Below, one piece after another: positions 37,401-59,859 of a stretch of DNA of 64,000 nucleotides (positions are counted from its first letter, which is position 1; every line of letters begins with the position of its first letter). Both the position numbers and the translations under genes were made by a program. A model generated the notes under the pieces. The model saw only the letters and a program-made list of their open reading frames with translations. It was not told the DNA's origin and ran no database searches. The stretch is from Mustelus asterias (lineage: Eukaryota), in the NCBI RefSeq assembly GCF_964213995.1, contig NW_027590137.1:372001-436000 (forward strand). The letters are read 5' to 3'.

Positions 37401-38308
37401 CGCAAACCCTTCAGAATCATTGTCAGCTCCCTGGTTTGCAGCTGCGGGGCTTCTCCCTCCCTCCCTCCCTCCCGGGAACAGGCCCAGGTTAACGGCCCCA
37501 TCCTGGCTCAGCCACTGGAGGATGGTTCACATCAGAGGATGGGGGAGGGGGACAATAAATAAGAGGTTACACTTTGACCTCAAATCAATGAGGACTCTGA
37601 TCTCTGGGAAGGAAGGAAACCCTGGGAGGTGGGCGGGGAGGATTCACAAACACCCGCTGGAGGCCCCAACACCCCCAATAAGACCCATTGGTTTTATTGT
37701 CAGTCTGCAGACAGGAGCTGGAGAACTGAACCCAGACAGAGGAGAGGGAGGGAGAAAACTGGGAGTGGAGGAAAGAAATGGTAGAGATGGGTTTGGATTT
37801 CAGCCCAGGGAAGAGGGAGAGTGTGTGGGACGGAGATTTACAGATTTGGGGGAACAAGAGAGGAAAAAATGTTCCAGGCGAACTAGAATTGTCTGTTCAG
37901 AGTTTGTATCGTGTTCTGACAGTGATGACTTTTCTAAACTGTTTTTACAGGATATTGGAAGTGAAAGATTGGCAGACAGAAAATTCAAACCGGACATCAC
38001 ATCTGACAAAGTCATTCAGTTCCTTCGGAGCTGAATATCATTGGTCTTTGAATATAGAAAGAGAAATATTTGTCTGTTCTGCCTGTGGGCAAAGAAATTA
38101 AACATCACTGTGACTGGAAAAGCATCGAGACAAACACACACCCGAGTGAGAGTGTTCCAGTGAACCGACTGTGGAAAGAGCTTTAACCAGTTACACAGCC
38201 TGAAAAAACATCACAGTTCACAGCAGGGTGAAACTACGTGTATGTTGTGTGTGTGGATGAGGCTTGAACTGATCATCCAACCTGGAGAAACACAAGGACA
38301 CCCGCACC

Positions 38309-39289
38309 ATGGAGAAACCGTGGAAATGTGTGGATTGTGGGAAGGGATTCGGTTTCCCATCACAACTGGAAGTTCATCGGCGCAGTCACACTGGGGAGAG
38401 ACCGTTCACCTGCTCCGTCTGTGGGAAGGGATTCACCCATTCATACAACCTTCTGACTCACCAACGGGTTCACACTGGGGAGAGGCCGTTCACCTGCCCT
38501 GTGTGTGGGAAGGGATTCACTCGCTCATCCCACATTGTGACACACCAACTTGTTCACACTGATGAGAGAATGTTTACATGTTCTGACTGTGAGAAGAGTT
38601 TTAAATGCAAAAAGGATCTGCTGACACACCAACGAATTCACACTGGGGAGAGACCGTTCACCTGCTCTGTGTGTGGGAAAGGATTCATTCAGTCATCCCA
38701 CTTGCAGACACATCAACTTGTTCACTCTGATAACAAACTTTTTAATTGTTCCCACTGTGCGAAGAGCTTTAAAAATAAAAAGGATCTGCTAACGCACCAA
38801 TATGCTCACACTGGGGAGAGGCCATTCACCTGCTGTGTGTGTGGGAAGGGATTCAGCCGTCCATCTGCCCTATTGAACCACCAGAGAATTCACACTGGGG
38901 AGAGGCCCTTCACCTGCTCAGACTGTGGGAAGGGATTCACTCGTTCATCCAACTTATTGAATCACCAGCGAGTTCACACTGGGGAGAGGCCGTTCACCTG
39001 CTCTGTGTGTGGGAAGGGATTCAGTCAGTCATCCAACCTGCTGACACACCAGAAAGTTCACAGTGCGGAGAGGCCACTTACCTGCTCTGTCTGTGGGAAG
39101 GGATTTTCTCATTTATCTTATCTTCTGAAACACCAGCGAGTTCACACTGGGGAGAGGCCGTTCACCTGTAATGTCTGTGGAAAGGGATTTATTCAGTCAT
39201 CCCACCTGCTAACACACCAGCGAGTTCACAAACGACTGCAAGGTTTGGATTCTACTCTTAATGATGCTGTTAATCATATCCAGGACTGA
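38309..39289 (+). CDS. C2H2 zinc-finger protein, 11 fingers
   Basis: Intact ORF from ACCATGG; paralog of 57808..58956. Confidence 0.9.
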
Positions 39290-39925
39290 ATCGTGTTCAC
39301 TCTGACAGTCTTCATCCGTTGAGGTTTAATATTCTGAATAAATATGAAATAGACCAGCTTTGTTTTTTAAAATTGTTGTAGATTTTTGTCTTTCCCACCT
39401 GACTGTTTAACATCACCAGGCTGGAGCTCAGAAAAGACAATCGGGGGTGGATCATATGGCAAACAGGACGCAGTCCTTCAGGGTCACAGAGGGACAAACA
39501 GCACTTTGCTCTTCCTCGTCTCTCTTCACGACAGCAAAGTACCCGTGTGGTTTAATCCTGAGATGTGCAAGAATCTCAGTCACTCCCTTCTATGTTTCAG
39601 CGCTCCTAGACCAGGAACAGAAGTTCCTTTACAACTGTGTTTAGAGTCAGGAAGAACAACAGTGAATGCTGGAAGCATGCTGCTAAATCAGAGATTGGTG
39701 CAAAACTGGGATCTGTTCCTGACTGAGAGTGAAATGGCAGGATTAGATTTCCAGACTGAAAATGCAGAAAAGTCTAAAATATTTTAATGTGTTTGTGTGT
39801 CAGTGCCAGTTTATTGAACAGAAACCAGCTCAAAATAAATTGGTTAAAGTCTGCATTAAAGTAGCAGCTGGAGAGTTCAAAGGAACCTGTTATCTGCTGG
39901 GACAATTAGACAACAATTTGATTCC

Positions 39926-39974
39926 CACTGAGACCCACAGTGAATGAGGCTCCCGCGGGCCTCATACAAAAAGT
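39926..39974 (+). pseudogene. 3' stub of a TCR V segment with an intact 23-RSS
   Basis: CA CTG AGA CC | CACAGTG (39936-39942), 23-nt spacer, ACAAAAAGT (39966-39974). The flank matches the V end GCG CTG AGC CC at 42391-42401. Confidence 0.8.
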
Positions 39975-40369
39975 GACGCAGACGTTTCAGGGTCAGAGAA
40001 AAAGAGTCGGATCTCAACGAAAATGCGCAGGAAATGAAGGCCACAATACAGCCCCAGCTGAATAATATTCCCCCACTGAGCTCAGCCATTGTCAGTGTTG
40101 TGAAATGTCACATTTGCCATCCTATTATTCCCGGATCAAATCCAACCATTCTCCGATCCCATCCGCACAAAATCTGCAGATTACCCCGGGTGAATAACTT
40201 CCTTAATCTGTACTTAGAAAAATTCTGGATTCGGTGCCTATCTGCCCGGCGACACATTTTAAAAGTGATCTATTATCAAATGCAGCCTCAGAATTGTTCC
40301 ATTTTCAAGTCCGTGGAGCAGAAATAATAACTGATTGAAATCAGAGCTTTTCTATTTGGGGAATAGAGG

Positions 40370-40820
40370 GGTACAGTGAAGATTTACTATGCTGATTCCT
40401 GGGATGGCAGCTCTGTCATATGAGGAGAGATTAAATCCGTTAGGATTATATTCACTGCGGTTTCGAATAGTGAGAGGGGGTCTCATAGAAACTTATAAAA
40501 TTCTAACAGGGTTCGACAGGGTAGATCCAGAAGACTGTTCCCAATGGTGGAATCCAGAACCATGGGTCATCTTTTGAAGATAAGGGAAAAACTGAGGTGA
40601 AGGGAAATTCCTTCATCCAGAGAGTGTTGAATGTATGGAATTCAATACCACCGAATGTAGTTGAGGCCAAAACGTTGTCTGATTTCAAGAAGAAATTTGA
40701 TATAGCTCTTGGGGCTAAAGGGGTCGAGGGGGAAGGAGGATCAGGATATTGAATTCCATGATCAGCTATGATTACGATGAATGGCGGAGAAGGCTCCTGC
40801 TTCTAGTTTCTATGTTATGA
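40370..40820 (+). mobile_element. CR1 3' fragment
   Basis: IPGMAALSYEERLNPLGLYSL...GLIETYKIL. Confidence 0.75.
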
Positions 40821-41800
40821 GTCCGTGAAATATTTCCTGGTGCAGAGTTGAGTGACTACTTATCCCCGGTATACTTACAGCACTAACTATTAATTATGTT
40901 GAGTCCTGGATGCTACTCATTAATCCCTGTACGTTAGGCTGCTGAATCATTGAATCCCGACAATGCAGGATGGAGCCTGTCCCGACAACAATCCCACCCA
41001 GGCCCTATCCCCGTAACCCACATATTTACCCTGCTATCCCCTGACACTTAGGGTAATTTTGCGTGGCCAATCCAGCAAACCTGCACAGTTTAGGAATGTG
41101 GAGGGAAACTGGAGCACCTGAGGAAACCCACGCAGACACGGTGAGAAAGTGCAAACTCCACAGAGACAGTGACCCGAGGCTGGAATCGAACCCGTGTCCC
41201 TGGGGCTGTGAGGCAACAATGCGAACCACTGCGCCACTGTGTCACCCATAAATGATTAAATTAGAAAAAAGGATCTGCCTTAAGAAAGATTGATGGACTG
41301 AGTTCTGAGGAAAGCGAGTTAACCAGTTAATGAGACAGAATAAGTGATGATGTGGGAGAGAGCAGAGAGAGAGCAAAGACTTTAGAAATAAGTTTACGGC
41401 CAGGGAAGGAATGTGATTGGAAAGTGCCAGCTATATTAAATCATTAACTAACAGTGATTGGTTCACTGGTTACGGGGCGGCATGATGCCACAATGGTCAG
41501 CGCTGCTGTCTCACAGTGTCAGGGACCCGGGTTCAATTCCGGCTTCGGATCACTTTCTGTCTGAGTTTGCATGTTCTCCCAGTGTCTACGTGGGTCCCCT
41601 TCGGGTTCTCCTGTTTCCTCCCACAGTCCAAAGATGTGCAGGTTAGGTTGATTGGCCATGCTAAATTGACCCGAGCGTCAGGGGATACGCAGGGTAAATA
41701 CATGGAGTTGCGGGAGTGGAGCCTGGGTGGTATTGTGACCGGTATAGACTCGATGGGGCGAATGGCCTCCTTCTGCACTGCAGGGATTTTATGATTCGCA

Positions 41801-41910
41801 GCTGACGTCAGCTCAGGGAGATGAGCCAATCGCAGCACTGAGAAACGCCTCCCTGTTTCTGAATACTTGAAGCTGCCTCTGATCTGAGTTCACTCTGTGA
41901 TATAAGACTA
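41801..41910 (+). promoter_or_regulatory. V-segment promoter (CRE, CCAAT, TATA)
   Basis: Palindromic GCTGACGTCAGC at 41801-41812, CCAAT at 41826, TATAAG at 41901 (63 nt before the ATG). Confidence 0.7.
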
Positions 41911-41963
41911 GAGGCAGCAACTTATTGTAAACATTGTCGCTGCTTACTGTCCAATCAGGAACC

Positions 41964-42401
41964 ATGTATCTCCTGTGTGCTTTACTGATAACAATGACCA
42001 CGCTGCCCGGTGAGTCTGAGCTCAGATCCTGAGTGTGTGTTTCATGGGTTATATTTGTTCACAGATTTCTCACACATTCTACATTTTGTTGCAGGAATCA
42101 ATGGCCAAGATTCAGTTTCCCAGGACCCGGCTGAATTAACGGTTCAGGAAGGATTGAACGTAATAGTGAATTGTAATTACACAACAACGGATGCTTTTCC
42201 AAATCTCTTCTGGTACATCCAGTATCCCGGGGAAGCTCCGAGATATTTACTGCAGAAATATAGCACGGGGGGCGGAGAAAAGTCTCCAGATTTCCCTGAC
42301 CGGTTTTCTGCTGATTTGGACAAGGACAAGAAAACAGTTCCTTTAAATATCACTGGGGTCCATGTCTCTGACTCTGCCGTGTATCACTGTGCGCTGAGCC
42401 C
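41964..42401 (+). CDS. TRAV: T-cell receptor alpha/delta-type variable gene segment (leader exon 41964-42009, intron 42010-42094, V exon 42095-42401)
   Basis: Leader MYLLCALLITMTTLP-G, then GTGAGT...TTTTGTTGCAG phase-1 intron. V exon INGQDSVSQ...VNCNY...LFWYIQYPGEAPRYLL...RFSADLD...VPLNI...SDSAVYHCALS has the canonical Cys/Trp/Cys. Alpha versus delta cannot be resolved by eye. Confidence 0.92.
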
Positions 42402-42440
42402 CACACTGCTACAGAGGCGCAGTGAGCCCGTACAAAAACC
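42402..42440 (+). other. V(D)J recombination signal sequence, 23-nt spacer
   Basis: CACACTG (42402-42408), 23 nt, then the consensus nonamer ACAAAAACC (42432-42440). Confidence 0.93.
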
Positions 42441-42636
42441 CGCAAAGGCACTCTCACCTCCTCTCACTGAATCAGATCTGTGACCTGGATTGTGAACTGT
42501 TAATACAAACAGAACAATTGTATAACGAAGAGTTAGTCCGAATGTTCTCATTCCATGGTGCTGAATGTGCCATTCTTGTTTAAACACTCTGCAATGCTGA
42601 GACTGGGAGAAGTGAACAACAGGGGGCAGCATTGCA

Positions 42637-43730
42637 GCTTCCATTTTACTATTATTCCTTCCAAAGTGGATAAGCTCACACTTACCAACGCTATACTCCA
42701 TCTGCCAGATCCTCGCCCACTCACTTAGCCTATCCAAATCTCTCTGCAGACTTACCGCATCCTCCACGCAATTCACTTTCCCACTCATCTTTGTGTCATC
42801 CGCAAACTTTGTTACCCAACACTCGGTCCCCTCCTCCAGATCGTCTATGCATATGGTAAATACTTGAGGCCCCAGCACCAATCCCTGTGGCACGCCACTA
42901 GTCACCAACTGCCAACCAGAAAAGCACCCATTTATTCCAACTCTCTGCTTCCTGTTAGATAGCCAATCCCCAATCCACGCTAACACTTTACCCCTAACTC
43001 CGTGCACCCTGATTTTCTGCAGCAACCTTTTGTGAGGCACCTTATCGAACGCCTTCTGGAAATCCAAAAACACCACATCCACTGGTTCCCCTCTGTCAAC
43101 CGCACTCGTTACATCAACATAAAAATCCAGTAAATTTGTCAAACACGACTTTCCCTTCATGAATCCATGCTGCGTCTGCTTGATCAAACCATTTTTTTCC
43201 AGGTGTCCTGCTATTTCTTCCTTAATGATGAATTCCAGCAATTTCCCAACTACGGACGTTAAGCTAACCGGCCTGTAGTTACCCGCCTTTTGTCTACCTC
43301 CTTTTTTAAACAGTGGCGTCACATTAGCTGTTTTCCAATCAGCCGGCACTTCCCCAGAGTCCAGCGTATTTTGATAAATTACAACCAACGCATCCTCTAT
43401 TACTTCTGCCATTTCTTTCAGTCCCCTGGGATGCATTCCATCCGGGCCCAGGGACTTGTCTACCTTTAGTCCCATTAGCCTCCCAAGCACTACCTCTTTA
43501 GTAATAGTAATCATTTTAAGGACCTCATCCCCTACAGTCCCATGACCGTCAATTTTCGGTAAGCTATTTGTGTCCTCTACCGTGAAGACTGATACAAAAA
43601 ACTTGTTTAAGGCCTCAGCCATTTCCTCGTTTCCCATTATTAAATCCCCCTTCTCATCTACTAAGGGTCCAACATTTACTTTAGCTACTCTTTTCCTTTT
43701 TATATATTTGTAAAAACTTTTACTATCTCT
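42637..43730 (-). mobile_element. CR1 RT fragment, truncated at both ends
   Basis: Middle of ORF 42384..43979: SKSFYKYIK...NYRPVSLTS...FADD...KCELIHFGRN. Confidence 0.88.
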
Positions 43731-43734
43731 CTGT

Positions 43735-43934
43735 CCCTCCCCCCCCCCTGGGCTTTGCCCCCCCCCCCCCCCCTGGGCTTTGCCCCCCCCCCCCCCGGCT
43801 TTGCCCCCCCCCCCGGGCTTTGCCCCCCCCCGGGCTTTGCCCCCCCCCCCCCGGGCTTTGCCCCCCCCGGGCTTTGCCCCCCCCGGGCATTGCCCCCCCC
43901 CCGAGCATTGCCCCCCCCCGAGCATTGCCCCCCC
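43735..43934. repeat. C-run minisatellite (C7-17 GGGCTTTG)n
   Basis: About 10 poly-C runs separated by GGGCTTTG, GGGCATTG or GAGCATTG. Confidence 0.85.
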
Positions 43935-44002
43935 AACCCACACATCCTGGGACACTAAGTGGCAATTGAGCATGGCCAATCAACCTAACCTGTACATCTT
44001 AT

Positions 44003-45056: not shown

Positions 45057-45380
45057 ATGGAGAAACCGTGGAAATGTGGGGACTGTGGGAAGGCATGTCA
45101 GTGCCCATCTGAGCTGGAAACCCATCGACGCAGCCACACCGGGGAGAGACCATTCACCTGCCTTGAGTGTAGGAAGTGTTTCACTCAGTCAAGCAACCTG
45201 CTGAGACACAAGCGAGTTCACACTGGGGAGAAACCGTACACTTGCTGTGTGTGTGGGAAGGGATTCACACATTCGTCCACCCTGCAGGATCACCAGCGGG
45301 TTCACACCGGGGAGAAGCCTGTCACCTGCTCCAAGTGCGGGAAGGGATTCAGTCGGTTATCAAACCTGCAGGAACACTAG
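45057..45380 (+). CDS. Short ZNF gene: 3 complete fingers, TAG in finger 4, a 5th finger following to 45479 (possible pseudogene)
   Basis: ACCATGG start; CAC TAG CGA GTT at 45375-45386; upstream mini-exon and intron 44531-44698. Confidence 0.75.
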   Translation: MEKPWKCGDCGKACQCPSELETHRRSHTGERPFTCLECRKCFTQSSNLLRHKRVHTGEKPYTCCVCGKGFTHSSTLQDHQRVHTGEKPVTCSKCGKGFSRLSNLQEH

Positions 45381-45476
<96 letters not shown>

Positions 45477-53291: not shown

Positions 53292-54470
53292 TCACTCGTG
53301 AACTCGCTGGTGTCTCAGCAGGTGGGATGAAACTCTGAATCCCTTCCCACACTGAGAGCAGGTGAATGGCCTCTCCCCAGTGTGAACTCGCTGGTGTGTC
53401 TGCAAGTTGGATGACTGAGTGAATCCCTTCCCACACTGAGAACAGTTGAATGGTCTCTCCCCAGTGTGAACTCGCTGGTGTCTCTGCAGGTGGGATGACT
53501 GAGTGAATCCCTTCCCACACTGAGAGCAGGTGAACGGCCTCTCCCCTGTGTGAACTCGCTGGTGTGTCCGCAGATCAGATGAGTTAGTGAATCCCTTCCC
53601 ACACTGAGAGCAGATGAATGGTTTCTCCCCAGTGTGAACTCGCTGGTGTATTCGCAGGCTGGATAACAGAATGAATCCCTTCCCACACTGAGAGCAGGTG
53701 AACGGCCTCTCCCTTGTGTGACGTAGCTGGTGTCTCTGCAGGTCGGCTGACTGAGTGAATCTCTTCCCACACTGAGAGCAGGTGAACGGTCTCTCCCCAG
53801 TGTGAACTCGTTCGTGTGTCCGCAGGATGGATGAGTTCGTGAATCCCTTCCCACACTGAGAACAGTTGAATGGCCTCTCCCCAGTGTGAACTCGTTGGTG
53901 TCTCTGCAGGAGGGATAACAGAATGAATCCCTTCCCACACTGAGAGCAGGTGAACGGCCTCTCTCCTGTGTGAACTTGCTGGTGTTTCTGCAAGCTGGAT
54001 AACTGAATGAATCCCTTCCCACACTGAGAGCAGGTGAATGGTTTCTCCCCAGTGTGAACTCGCTGGTGTATCCGCAGGCTGGATAACAGAATGAATCCTT
54101 TCCCACACTGAGAGCAGGTGAATGGCCTCTCCCCAGTGTGAACTCGTTCATGTGTCCGCAGGGTGGATAATTGAGTGAATCCCTTCCCACACTGAGAGCA
54201 GGTGAACGGCCTCTCCCCAGTGTGAACTCGCTGGTGTCTCTGCAGGTCGGATAACTGACTGAATCCCTTCTCACATTGAGAGCAGGAAAATGGCCTCTCT
54301 CCAGTGTGAACTCGCTGGTGTCTCTGCAGGAGGGATAATCGAGTGAATCCCTTCCCACATTGAGAGCAGGTGAATGGTCTCTCCCCAGTGTGGCTGCGTC
54401 GATGAGCTTCCAGCTTAGATGGGGCTCTGTATCCCTTCCCACAGTCCCCACATTTCCATGGTTTCTCCAT
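53292..54470 (-). CDS. C2H2 zinc-finger protein, 14 fingers
   Basis: ACCATGG start at 54470; intact array; same subfamily as the genes starting at 11859 and 33013. Confidence 0.9.
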
Positions 54471-55059: not shown

Positions 55060-55378
55060 AGAGAGATTCCTATTCGCTGATTCAGGCAGGCTCCATTGTG
55101 ACGTCACAATGCGGAAGTTGTCCAATGAGCTTCAGATTGAAACTTCCTCTTCTGGACAACATCTGGGAGGAAATCAAAGTTTCCCCCTTTCCATTTCTTT
55201 TCTCATTCTGGGGAAATTGGGGACTTGCAGCAACTGAAGGGAGTGAAGTGAATTCGGTCTGTATATTCCACACATTTTTACTCCAGTAATGTAGACATTT
55301 ATTTGTCTGGCAGCCTGCATGGAAATTTTCAGCTCTCTGCATCCAGGGCAAGAAGCAGTGAGCATGGATCTGTCAATC
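55060..55378 (+). promoter_or_regulatory. 5' end of a ZNF gene (CRE/ETS promoter and first exons) cut off by a Penelope-like insertion
   Basis: 18-bp palindrome CATTGTGACGTCACAATG (55094-55111) followed by CGGAAGT; 55270-55378 matches 44395-44495. Confidence 0.6.
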
Positions 55379-55750
55379 ACACATGAGGACGGCCTCAACC
55401 GGGATCTTGGGTTCATGTCACACTATCTGTAACTCACACTGTCTGTAACCCCCACAAATTGCCTGGGCTTGCAAAATCTCACTAACTGTCCTGGCTGGAG
55501 ACAATACACATCTCTTTAACCTGTGCTTCACCCTCTCTCCACTCACATTGTCTGTACCTTTAAGACTTGATTACCTGTAAAGACTCACATTCCAACCATT
55601 ATTTTGTAAATTGAGTTTGTGTCTCTGTGCCCTGTTTGTGAATAGAACTCCCACTCACCTGATGAAGAGCAGCGCTCCAAAATCTTGTGGCTTATGCCAG
55701 CAAATTAACCTGTTGGATTTTAACCTGGTGTTGTGAGATTACTTACTGTC
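55378..55750 (+). mobile_element. Penelope-like element 3' end
   Basis: THEDGLNRDLGFMSHYL* followed by the same pseudo-LTR as at 16290-16637. Confidence 0.8.
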
Positions 55751-56232
55751 TGAGGCTGAAACAGGCTGTTCACAACCAGGGTGAAATAGTTCATCCCAAT
55801 ATGAGCTTCCAACCACGTCCACATCATCATCAAGACCACCTTCATTCAAAGTAATTAATTAATTAACAGTAATGAATCATAAAATACATTGTAGGAGGAG
55901 GCCATTCAGCCCATCGAGCCTGCACCGACAACAATCCCATCCAGGCCCTATCCACATATTTACCTGTTAATCCCCCTGATGCCAAGGGTTAATTTATCAT
56001 GGCCAATCTGTCTAACCTGCACATCTTTGGACTGTGGAAGGAAACCGGAACACCCGGAGGAAACCCACCCAGACACGGGGAGAATGTAGAAACTCTGCAC
56101 AGACAGCGACCCGAGGCTGGAATTGAACCCGGGTCCCTGGCGCTGTTAGGCAGCTGCGCTAACCACTGTGCCACCGGGTCACATGTCAGTGCCATCGCCC
56201 GACTCCAGCCCAGTGTCAGCTCATCTGGAACC

Positions 56233-56396
56233 CTCACCCATTCCATTGTGACATCACACTCTCACCCATTCCATTGTGACGTCACACTCTCACCCATTCC
56301 ATTGTGACATCACACTCTCACCCATTCCATTGTGACCTCACACTCCCACCCATTCCATTGTGACCTCACACTCTCACCCATTCCATTGTGACGTCA
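56233..56396. repeat. 28-bp minisatellite, about 6 copies, each with a CRE-like site
   Basis: Unit CTCACCCATTCCATTGTGAC(A/G/C)TCACACT starting at 56233, 56261, 56289, 56317, 56345 and 56373. Confidence 0.9.
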
Positions 56397-56439: not shown

Positions 56440-56900
56440 CAGCCTCAATGGCGGCAGTCAGCCCGGGTCTAACACTACAAGCTGCCGCTCCATTTGGTAC
56501 AAAGGGGGGGAACCGGGAAGTTCATTTCCGGGGTTTGGGGTTGAACAACATGTTTACAAAGCCTCTCCACCCACCCGCCACATTTATCATTCCCCGCGCG
56601 CCGCCCTCTACCTCGTATTGATCTCGCTACCGAGTTAAAACCGTCCATCCGTCGTCATTACCCGCACTGCGCATGCTACAGGCCCCGCCTCTCATTCACT
56701 CCGATTGGTTGGAGGACCAGCCGCTCCCGCTCGGTCCTCCAGTCCGGCCCCCTCTTCCTATTGGTCCGGAGCTGCCGTCAATCAGTCCCCGGGCATTGTG
56801 ATGTGGAGCATGCGCAGTGTCATTGCTGGCCTTGGCGCTTGTTTGTCCCGGAGAAGCGGAGTCAGCGTTAGGCGGTGGCTGGGAGGATTTGGAAACACTT
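56440..56900 (+). promoter_or_regulatory. ZNF promoter module (copy C)
   Basis: Same motifs as copies A and B, plus CCGGGAAGT. Confidence 0.7.
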
Positions 56901-57807
56901 TGTGGATCCGCAAACCCTTCAGAGTCATTGTCAGCTCCCTGGTTTGCAGCTGCGGGGCTTCTCCCTCCCTCCCTCCCGGGAACAGGCCCAGGTTAACGGC
57001 CCCATCCTGGCTCAGCCACTGGAGGATGGTTCACATCAGAGGATGGGGGAGGGGGACAATAAATAAGAGGTTACACTTTGGCCTCAAATCAATGAGGACT
57101 CTGATCTCTGGGAAGGAAGGAAACCCTGGGAGGTGGGCGGGGAGGATTCACAAACACCCGCTGGAGGCCCCAACACCCCCAATAAGACCCATTGGTTTTA
57201 TTGTCAGTCTGCAGACAGGAGCTGGAGAACTGAACCCAGACAGAGGAGAGGGAGGGAGAAAACTGGGAGTGGAGGAAAGAAATGGTGAGATGGGTTTGGA
57301 TTTCAGCGCAGGGAGGAGGGAGAGTGTGTGGGACGGAGATTTACAGATTTGGGGGAACAAGAAAGGAAAAAATGTTCCAGAAAGACTAGAATTGTTCAGA
57401 GTTTCTATCCTGTTCTGACAGTGATGACTTTTCTAAACTGTTTTTACAGGATATTCAAAGTGAAGGAATGGCAGACAGAAAACTCAAACCGAACATCACA
57501 TCTGACAAAGTCATTCAGTTCCTTCGGAGCTGAATATGATCGGTCTTTGAATATGGAAGGAGCAATATTTGTCTGTTCTGCCTGTGGGCAAAGAAATTAA
57601 ACATCAGTGTGACCAGAAAAGCAGCAGGACAAACACACACCCGAGTGAGAGTGTTCCAGTGAACCGACTGTGGAAAGAGCTTTAACCAGTTACACAGCCT
57701 GAAAAAAAATCACAGTTCACAGCAGGGTGAAACTACGTGTATGTTGTGTGTGTGGATGAGGCTTGAACTGATCATCCAACCTGGAGAAACACAAGGGCAC
57801 CAGCACC

Positions 57808-58956
57808 ATGGAGAAACAGTGGAAATGTGTGGATTGTGGGAAAGGAATCAGTTTCCCATCACAACTGGAAGTTCATCAGCGCAGTCACACTGGGGAGAGA
57901 CCGTTCACCTGCTCTGTTTGTGGGAAGGGATTCACCCATTCATACAACCTTCTGACTCACCAACGGGTTCACACTGGGGAGAGGCCGTTCACCTGCCCTG
58001 TGTGTGGGAAGGGATTCACTCGCTCATCCCACATTGTGACACACCAACTTGTTCACACTGATGAGAGACTGTCTCCATGTTCTGACTGTGGGAAGAGTTT
58101 TAAATGCAAAAAAGATCTGCTGACGCACCAACGTATTCACACTGGGGAGAGACCGTTCACCTGCTGTGTGTGTGGGAAAGGATTCATTCAGTCATCCCAC
58201 TTGCAGACACATCAACTTGTTCACTCTGATAACAAACTTTTTAATTGTTCCCACTGTGAGAAGAGCTTTAAAAATAAAAAAGATCTGCTGACGCACCAAT
58301 ATACTCACACTGGGGAGAGGCCATTCACCTGCTGTGTGTGTGGGAAGGGATTCAGCCATCCATCTGCCCTATTGAACCACCAGAGAATTCACACTAGGGA
58401 GAGGCCCTTCACCTGCTCAGACTGTGGGAAGGGATTCATTAATTCATCCAACCTTCTGATACACCAGCAACTCCACACAGGGGATCGACCGTTCACCTGC
58501 TCTGAATGTGGGAAGGGATTCACCCGTTCATACAACCTTCTGACACAGCAGCAGGTTCACAGTGAGGAGAGGCCATTCACTTGCTCCGTATGTGGGAAGG
58601 GATTCACTCGTTCATCCAACCTATTGAATCACCAGCGAGTTCACACTGGGGAGAGGCCGTTCACTTGCTCCATGTGTGGGAAGGGATTCAGTCAGTCATC
58701 CAACCTGCTGACACATCAGAGAGTTCACAGTGGGGAGAGGCCATTTACCTGCTCTGTCTGTGGGAAGGGATTTTCTCATTTCTCTTATCTTCTGAAACAC
58801 CAGCGAGTTCACACTGGGGAGAGGCCGTTCACCTGTAATGTCTGTGGAAAGGGATTTGTTCAGTCATCCCACCTGCTAACACACCGGCGAGTTCACAAAC
58901 GACTGCAAGGTTTGGATTCTACACTTATCGATGCTGTTAATCATATCCAGGTCTGA
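57808..58956 (+). CDS. C2H2 zinc-finger protein, 13 fingers (finger 9 His-to-Gln)
   Basis: Intact ORF from ACCATGG. Confidence 0.9.
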
Positions 58957-59859
58957 ATCATCTTCACTCTGACTTTTTTCTTCTGTTGAGGTTTGATATT
59001 CTGAATAAATGTGAAATAGACATTTGATTGAATCATTGTTGTAGATTTTTGTCTTTTTCATTTGAGTGTTTAACGTCACCAGGCTGGAGCTCAGAAAGGG
59101 CAATCTGAGGGAGGATCACACAGTAGGAACAGAACTTCATTCTTGACCCAGTCCTTCAGGGTCACGCTGAGAGGGACAAACAGCACTTTGGTCTTTTTCG
59201 TCACTTTTCACTGACAGCAAAGTCCCCGTGTGGGTGAATCCTGAGGTGTGTAAGAAATGTGTCCCAGTCGTTCTTTTCCATGGTTCCGAGCTCCGAGACA
59301 CGGAACAGAAGCTCTTTTACAACTGTGTTTAGAGTTAGGAAGAACAATGGTGAATGCTGGAAACGTGCTGTCAAAGATTGGTGTAAAACTGGGATCTATT
59401 CCTGACTGAGAGTGAAACGGCAGGTTTAGGTTTCCAGACTAAAAATGCAAAAAAGTCTAAAACATTTTAATGTGTGTGTGTGTCAGTCCTGGTTTATTGA
59501 ACAGAAACTGGCTTAAAATAAATTGGTTGAAGTCTGCATCAAAGTAGCAGCTGGAGACGTTCAAAGGAGCCTGTTAACTGCTGGGACAATTAGACAACAA
59601 TTTGATTCCCAGATAGAGAAGGAGCTGCAGTGTGGATCCAAAAATTCTCAGTTTTGTTGTGTGCTTCCCATACACTATCCTTTTAAATAAACCTCACTCC
59701 TATCAGCCTTTAACCATTAGAAACAGAACAGAGAGAAGCTGAGCAGCAACAGAGCCCTCACTGACCATTTAAGAATGAGTGATGTGTTCAGCTGAAGTTT
59801 CCTGTTGGTAGTTTTTTGGGTGATCTTATTTTGATCATTCTCAGTGACCCCTGGGTGTG

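Follow-up and report, generated by a model that had tools for sequence, protein, structure and literature searches.

An intact TRAV/DV-type V segment and a truncated neighbour within a C2H2 zinc-finger cluster of the shark Mustelus asterias

Introduction

Is a T-cell receptor (TCR) V segment that sits between zinc-finger (ZNF) genes a working part of a V region with which those genes are interleaved, or a displaced copy beyond the reach of its J and C partners? The question is raised by a stretch of 64,000 nucleotides of the genome of Mustelus asterias (NCBI RefSeq assembly GCF_964213995.1, contig NW_027590137.1, positions 372,001 to 436,000 of the forward strand), which is called the window throughout and to which all coordinates refer. 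Orphons of immunoglobulin (Ig) and TCR genes, such as those of human TRBV and IG, are V segments with an RSS that lie outside the working locus; they may look intact, and their status is defined by position. The V segment of the window resembles them in being RSS-bearing and intact-looking, and whether it should be called an orphon likewise rests on position. The analysis below considers what kind of V segment this is, what surrounds it, how it is represented in genomic DNA, and which account of its presence among ZNF genes fits best.

Results

The V segment has four parts, all on the plus strand:

41964-42009, plus strand: leader exon (L-PART1), 46 nt, with its ATG at 41964, encoding MYLLCALLITMTTLP and the first base of a Gly codon
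42010-42094, plus strand: intron of the V segment, 85 nt, phase 1, GT-AG, reading GTGAGT...TTGCAG
42095-42401, plus strand: V exon, open, with a V-set domain, its end reading ...DSAVYHCALSP
42402-42440, plus strand: 23-RSS, heptamer CACACTG, 23-nt spacer and nonamer ACAAAAACC, directly 3' of the V exon

A leader exon followed by a short phase-1 intron and a V exon is the layout of TRAV/TRDV genes, and a sequence-only reading that had described a 46-nt leader exon, an 85-nt GT-AG intron and an open V exon with Cys-Trp-Cys agrees with these positions to the base, as does its CACACTG-23-nonamer signal at 42402-42440. Translated from 42097, the V exon gives INGQDSVSQDPAELTVQEGLNVIVNCNYTTTDAFPNLFWYIQYPGEAPRYLLQKYSTGGGEKSPDFPDRFSADLDKDKKTVPLNITGVHVSDSAVYHCALSP, 102 codons with Cys26, Trp39 and Cys98, the second Cys in Y-x-C context; the exon has two cysteines only and two N-glycosylation sequons. 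The 841 bases from 41798 to 42638, which hold promoter, V and RSS, have no second match of at least 120 aligned bases within the window.

The heptamer (42402-42408) matches the consensus at 6/7 positions, keeping CAC and differing at position 5 (G-to-C), while the nonamer (42432-42440), separated from it by the spacer at 42409-42431, matches at 9/9. Shuffles lead one to expect 0.01 copies of CACNNTG-N23-ACAAAAACC in the window, which has one, and in a loose RSS scan of both strands of the window the signal of this V was the sole one among 14 matches to have a 9/9 nonamer. When the count starts at 42388, where the Cys codon begins, T8 and G9 are in place and the first heptamer base falls at +15; T8G9 with an RSS at +15 is given as the V-alpha signature of cartilaginous and basal as well as teleost fishes in the available part of Giorgetti et al. 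2023 (PMC10322711). Both features are shared with the 3'-end design that the same part of that report sets out for microhomology-directed V-J joining in fish V-alpha, but the heptamer differs, being CACAGTG in the design and CACACTG in the window's V. Read in frame, the heptamer and the start of the spacer give PTLLQR, and because P0001 and P0009 (proteins only), the closest relatives of germline type, share this read-through, the variant heptamer is probably a family trait and not a sign of decay. The V segment is predicted to be rearrangement-competent.

Candidate regulatory motifs lie on either side of the V segment:

41800-41813, plus strand: palindrome AGCTGACGTCAGCT, candidate V-promoter element, 14 nt, holding a CRE octamer, 154 nt before the ATG
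41803-41810, plus strand: CRE octamer TGACGTCA, inside the 14-nt palindrome
41826-41830, plus strand: candidate CCAAT box, a short motif that alone carries no statistical weight
41901-41905, plus strand: candidate TATAA box, 59 nt upstream of the ATG
42616-42629, plus strand: CTCF-like motif ACAACAGGGGGCAG, a lead only, 2 mismatches, co-oriented with the V, 175 nt behind the nonamer

The CRE, CCAAT and TATA motifs were all found where they had first been read, and a promoter role is a candidate one. For the CRE octamer the window has 4 copies where 0.69 would be expected; the motif is not V-specific, because the other three copies sit near ZNF promoters (55099-56396). CTCF matches were scored against a 14-nt consensus. 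If up to 3 mismatches are allowed, the window has 93 matches, 110 being expected; at 1 mismatch or fewer the window held no match, and none to the consensus was found 23-26 bp behind the RSS of the V.

The V exon holds a Pfam V-set domain (E 1e-17), and the best single-V-domain PDB chains found with phmmer are TCR alpha. In one aligned alpha-beta single-chain construct from the PDB, the alpha domain scores 60.3 bits vs 22.8 for the beta domain. An Ig heavy or light V segment does not agree with the scores of single Ig V domains, 14-22 bits in one aligned multi-domain antibody construct from the PDB vs 60 for a TCR alpha V. In a first protein search, 7 of 8 candidates matched the V, the best being a 146-aa ENA prediction at 74% identity and the second an Ig-like protein of Callorhinchus milii at 52%, with teleost V-alpha-like predictions making up the remainder at 38-50%. 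A second search, with region 29-131 of the unspliced window ORF 42013-42480 as query and candidate chains of up to 275 aa, gave 2 matches among 3 candidates, one of them useful. This protein, P0008 (UniParc UPI0001F848BE), is 210 aa long: a leader and a V are followed by a J (..LLFGNGTRLTVEP) and by the first part of a C domain. Its alignment with solved TCR alpha chains extends to residue 172, inside C-alpha. With 59% identity between the two V parts it is the nearest full-length relative, a rearranged V-J-C alpha chain. Its leader has 8/15 residues identical to the window's leader exon when counted by eye; BLASTP of the leader exon against P0008 returned no alignment, the query being too short.

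The top ESM Atlas clusters for the V are named "T-cell receptor alpha/delta variable" and "TVA4". An AlphaFold2 model (pLDDT 85.4) has the Ig V fold, with TM 0.8-0.87 to V domains, and Foldseek recovered the generic Ig V fold, not separating V types, with TCR alpha chains at the top identity of 37-42%. When the V exon was searched in metagenome contigs, 186 pattern stretches matched and 0 were confirmed.

Two other classes of V-bearing gene were considered and rejected. The V-delta that supports NAR-TCR lacks a leader exon of its own and carries an extra unpaired Cys; the window's V has a leader and only two Cys. A non-rearranging or germline-joined V-type receptor gene does not fit the presence of an RSS, the lack of an FGXG-type motif adjoining the V and the lack of a C exon. 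The V of the window is almost certainly an intact germline TRAV/DV-type segment: the V-set domain, the TCR alpha matches in the PDB, P0008, the Atlas clusters and the 3' signature agree on the intact TCR alpha/delta-type V with a 23-RSS that had been proposed from the letters. In itself it is an ordinary member of a well-known family.

The surroundings of the V are less ordinary in character:

36109: tRNA-Val, one in the window
38309-39289, plus strand: upstream C2H2 ZNF exon, 326 aa, 11 fingers, within the duplicate 37056-39927
40335-41832, no strand assigned: high-copy short repeats, SINE-like, partly mutual inverted copies, depth 10^3 to 10^6, upstream of the V promoter
42640-43979, minus strand: LINE reverse-transcriptase fragment, RVT_1 E 3e-30, starting 200 nt behind the RSS
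45057-45473, plus strand: downstream C2H2 ZNF array, 5 fingers, the fourth interrupted by an in-frame stop

As a whole, the window represents a cluster of C2H2 zinc-finger genes, with about 10 finger arrays on both strands by finger-motif scan vs 1 intact V per 64 kb. The ATG of the V follows the end of the upstream ZNF ORF (39289) by 2675 nt, and from the nonamer it is 2617 nt to the start of the downstream ORF (45057), distances that bear out the description of ZNF genes some 2.7 kb away on either side. Repeat blocks of enormous depth occupy 40335-40762, 40977-41297 and 41405-41832 and resume at about 42640. A long minus-strand ORF overlapping the RSS is only the run-on of the frame of the LINE fragment; among 10 other long ORFs compared with Pfam, 7 are LINE reverse transcriptases and 3 have no Pfam family. 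Neither a TCR C exon nor a J motif accompanied by a 12-RSS was found in the 64 kb. The absence of J, C and 12-RSS that had been reported for the window therefore stood, both by motif scan and with the J-C part of P0008; tblastn with that part and nine V proteins found only the V itself and a remnant at 39928.

Reads from four runs (X1, X3, X4 and X5; one organism, four samples) were mapped on 39800-43000. All four have even depth over unique, non-genic stretches, X1 at a depth of 23-47, and because the depth is even and intron and RSS are kept in the contigs, the runs are genomic DNA. The unspliced, unrearranged V was present in contigs of 4/4 runs at single-copy depth, without frameshift or stop; a spliced or V-J-joined form was not found, nor would DNA of bulk tissue be expected to yield one. 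One X1 contig of 905 nt spans 41765-42669, taking in promoter, V, RSS and the LINE junction. The V unit has seven variable positions, at depths consistent with alleles of a gene present in single copy. The intron has 42031 G>C (all four runs), and the base that follows the nonamer has 42441 C>T (X1). The other five are in the V exon; each of them changes an amino acid (I23T, T31K, K54R, S56G, D73H), and none makes a stop or frameshift. Three of these five fall in CDR1 (NYTTTDAFPN; T31K) or CDR2 (QKYSTGGG; K54R and S56G). Five of five nonsynonymous is not significant, having a chance of about 0.24 if three quarters of random changes are nonsynonymous. Loose contig ends at 42574 and 42641 may reflect a structural variant on the 3' side of the V; one piece of this loose sequence, 13 nt long, is absent from the window.

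The remnant found by tblastn is a second V-derived element:

39928-39974, plus strand: truncated second V, consisting of the last codons (..LRP) and a 23-RSS, the V body missing

Its RSS (39936-39974) reads CACAGTG-23-ACAAAAAGT and is preceded by ..CTGAGACC; in frame the end is LRPTV, a typical fish V-alpha end, and a teleost V protein aligns there in tblastn. Of the RSS-like matches in the loose scan, the other 12 lack a preceding V end and are regarded as chance matches. The intact V is the only one in the window, and the sequence-only description is corrected by the addition of this element about 2.5 kb upstream. Up to 39927 one reads the last part of a ZNF unit of 2.9 kb (37056-39927), duplicated at 56567-59611 (83-94% identity), and beyond the corresponding point the sister copy continues differently. 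The body of the second V is replaced by the end of the ZNF-unit duplication at 39927. Overlapping X1 contigs cover 39800-40498, including the 39927 junction, with zero differences from the assembly. Two X4 contigs begin their match at 39926, the 12 bases in front of it translating as a V end with Y-Y-C, and the match of one X5 contig likewise ends at 39926. From the loose ends at 39926, with Y-Y-C in X4, it follows that an intact form of the second V exists, as an allele or a paralogue. Because the two V-derived elements share an orientation and their RSSs are 2466 nt apart, the V island looks like a piece of an array that was overwritten by a ZNF-unit duplication, rather than a lone V inserted.

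Discussion

The sequence-only reading had offered two alternatives for the V, a segment of a V region in which ZNF genes are interspersed or a displaced orphon, without choosing between them. The evidence leans toward the former, the second, truncated V in the same orientation included, and on balance we favor the view that this is a functional TRAV/DV segment of an interleaved V region and not an unused orphon. The CRE/CCAAT/TATA-type promoter at about 41800-41930 would then drive transcription of the V, and the leader would be spliced to the V exon from 42009 to 42095. Judging from the signals present, RAG would cut at 42402 in thymocytes, the 23-RSS pairing with the 12-RSS of a J-alpha or D-delta, and the V end ..TGTGCGCTGAGCCC (..CALSP) would be joined to a J-alpha or D/J-delta elsewhere on the chromosome, possibly by TG microhomology as in the fish V-alpha treated in the available part of PMC10322711. 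The small island of intact V and truncated neighbour would be a fragment of a V region split by ZNF units and retroelements, with V and ZNF genes presumably alternating over the locus as a whole and presumably linked to J and C.

The same island could instead have been moved by segmental duplication from TRA/TRD into the ZNF cluster, in which case the V would be a young orphon, beyond the reach of any J and hardly used. Such an origin, which we hold to be unlikely although deserving of serious weight, is consistent with the lack of J and C in the 64 kb, with the V being the sole intact one in the window beside a neighbour already destroyed, with a LINE fragment lying 200 nt behind the RSS, and with the lack of a canonical CTCF site adjoining the RSS. 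Against it, a V and its J are normally several hundred kb to over 1 Mb apart in TRA loci (those of opossum, human and mouse, in the available part of PMC2275272), and the V itself has no disabling change in 4/4 samples, a perfect RSS nonamer and an intact V-alpha 3' signature. It is very improbable that the setting is an artefact of assembly, a chimera in which V and ZNF genes were falsely joined through repeats. The repeats at 40335-41832 and from 42640 do break every short-read contig, and no listed contig reaches from a ZNF exon to the V; but the unique pieces between the repeats have equal depth, the X1 contigs pass through 39927 without differences, the 905-nt contig carries the assembly across the whole V unit, and the V remnant is fused directly to ZNF-unit sequence, which joins V and ZNF independently of the repeats.

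The open frame had also been taken to allow use of the V unrearranged, as a single V domain, secreted or otherwise, that reads through the RSS to a stop ending at 42483. The frame is indeed open to that stop, and the tail after the nonamer has 11/13 residues identical to the paralogue P0001, which stops at the same place. Read-through ORFs are nevertheless general in germline V predictions (P0002, P0003, P0004, P0007 and P0009). Because the nonamer reads QKP and the RSS is read through in 6/8 germline-type relatives (these five and P0001), the open frame is a generic by-product. The domain would lack its G strand, which a J has to supply, and downstream there are no transmembrane or C exons, just the opposite-strand LINE fragment. 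Unrearranged use is hardly credible, and that suggestion is abandoned.

The interleaved reading has partial counterparts in known systems. One is the set of germline segments known from the nurse shark (Ott et al. 2018, PMC5931798), likewise TCR alpha/delta V segments of a cartilaginous fish; the sections of that report available here describe 17 on BACs, stated to be a small part of the repertoire, and these sections do not describe neighbouring non-TCR genes. In opossum, human and mouse, according to the available part of PMC2275272, TRAV segments at the 5' end of TRA/TRD are interspersed with olfactory-receptor genes, so that functional V segments stand among an unrelated, tandemly duplicating family, much as in the V/ZNF setting of the window. 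The family differs: olfactory-receptor genes are interleaved in mammals, whereas in the shark window it is C2H2 ZNF genes, which locally outnumber the V (about 10 arrays vs 1). C2H2 ZNF genes flank the 5' end of the marsupial TRM locus (PMC2275272 and PMC7615758, the parts available), where poly-zinc-finger genes directly adjoin TCR segments, as they do in the shark window; in TRM they flank the locus at its 5' end, whereas in the window the V segments lie between ZNF genes. No description of TCR V segments interleaved with ZNF genes was found in the full-text literature searched, in a field where much shark TCR work is not open access, nor in the available parts of salmonid, axolotl, newt and whale-shark papers. 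Non-TCR gene families inside V regions are already known, and the ZNF arrangement, should it be locus-wide, would count as a modest new variant.

A broader picture may be drawn tentatively. The shark alpha/delta V repertoire could consist of small islands scattered through ZNF clusters over hundreds of kb and many assembly pieces, the two families turning over together; and it is conceivable, to the same limited degree, that V segments arise, become separated and, as at 39927, are destroyed through duplications of ZNF units. If the repertoire is so scattered, deletional V-J joining would excise sets of ZNF genes, on one chromosome per T-cell clone, since joining is by deletion if the V is oriented as J-C and the intervening ZNF genes are then lost from that chromosome. 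Interleaving throughout the locus would mean that V regions tolerate, and are remodelled by, a fast-duplicating family at the base of the jawed vertebrates, and would widen what is known from mammals, where olfactory-receptor genes stand among distal TRAV. The V is in addition of use in annotation of the alpha/delta locus of cartilaginous fishes, which is poorly charted, and the junction at 39927 provides a concrete example of a ZNF duplication that deleted a V segment.

Variation within the V unit

Patterns of variation in the intact TCR alpha/delta-type V segment could be compared across four genomic sequencing runs (X1, X3, X4 and X5, each from a different sample). Within the V exon five positions varied among the four samples (42164, 42188, 42257, 42262 and 42313), a number too small for a test of selection; all five variants changed an amino acid (I23T, T31K, K54R, S56G and D73H), with three of the five falling in CDR1 or CDR2. 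In the intron, all four runs carried C at position 42031 where the window has G, and the window base is either a minor allele or an assembly error.

Duplication, decay and a second V end

Features in the window that bear on the surrounding zinc-finger (ZNF) cluster were as follows.

37056-39927 and 56567-59611: ZNF unit, 2.9-kb direct duplication
39926-39974: truncated V-alpha end with a 23-RSS, joined at 39927 to the end of the duplicated ZNF unit
55099, 56277 and 56389: three more CRE octamers, clustered between a divergent pair of ZNF genes, one at 54452 on the minus strand and one at 57826 on the plus strand

The two copies of the ZNF unit were 94% identical in their 5′ part and 83% identical across the finger array and 3′ flank, and they diverged exactly at 39927/59611. 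Ahead of 39926, two contigs from X4 carried an intact V end with the Y-Y-C motif and one contig from X5 likewise broke at that position, so the truncated V also has an undamaged form, either an allele or a paralogue. In-frame stops interrupted fingers at four places, one in the fourth finger of the ZNF array downstream of the intact V (45327-45389) and the others at 34207-34269, 32010-32072 and 38075-38137, indicating that decay is under way in several ZNF units. The clustering of the CRE octamers suggests that some ZNF promoters bear this element.

Sequence behind the RSS

When the V was read through past the nonamer, 11 of 13 residues of the tail (42441-42483) were the same as in its paralogue P0001, and the stop was shared; this is a closer match than in the V proper, where the two are 74% identical. 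Either conservation of a non-coding element behind the RSS or simply a lack of diversifying change may account for this. Further downstream, contigs from X3, X4 and X5 had loose ends at 42574 and 42641 that ran on into sequence not found in the window, possibly reflecting structural polymorphism or a low-copy repeat right before the LINE junction. In P0009, another close germline-type relative from a JGI contig outside the window, the read-through tail behind the nonamer reads ..GDQQRARP, which, as a guess from back-translation, a CTCF-core-like sequence could encode.
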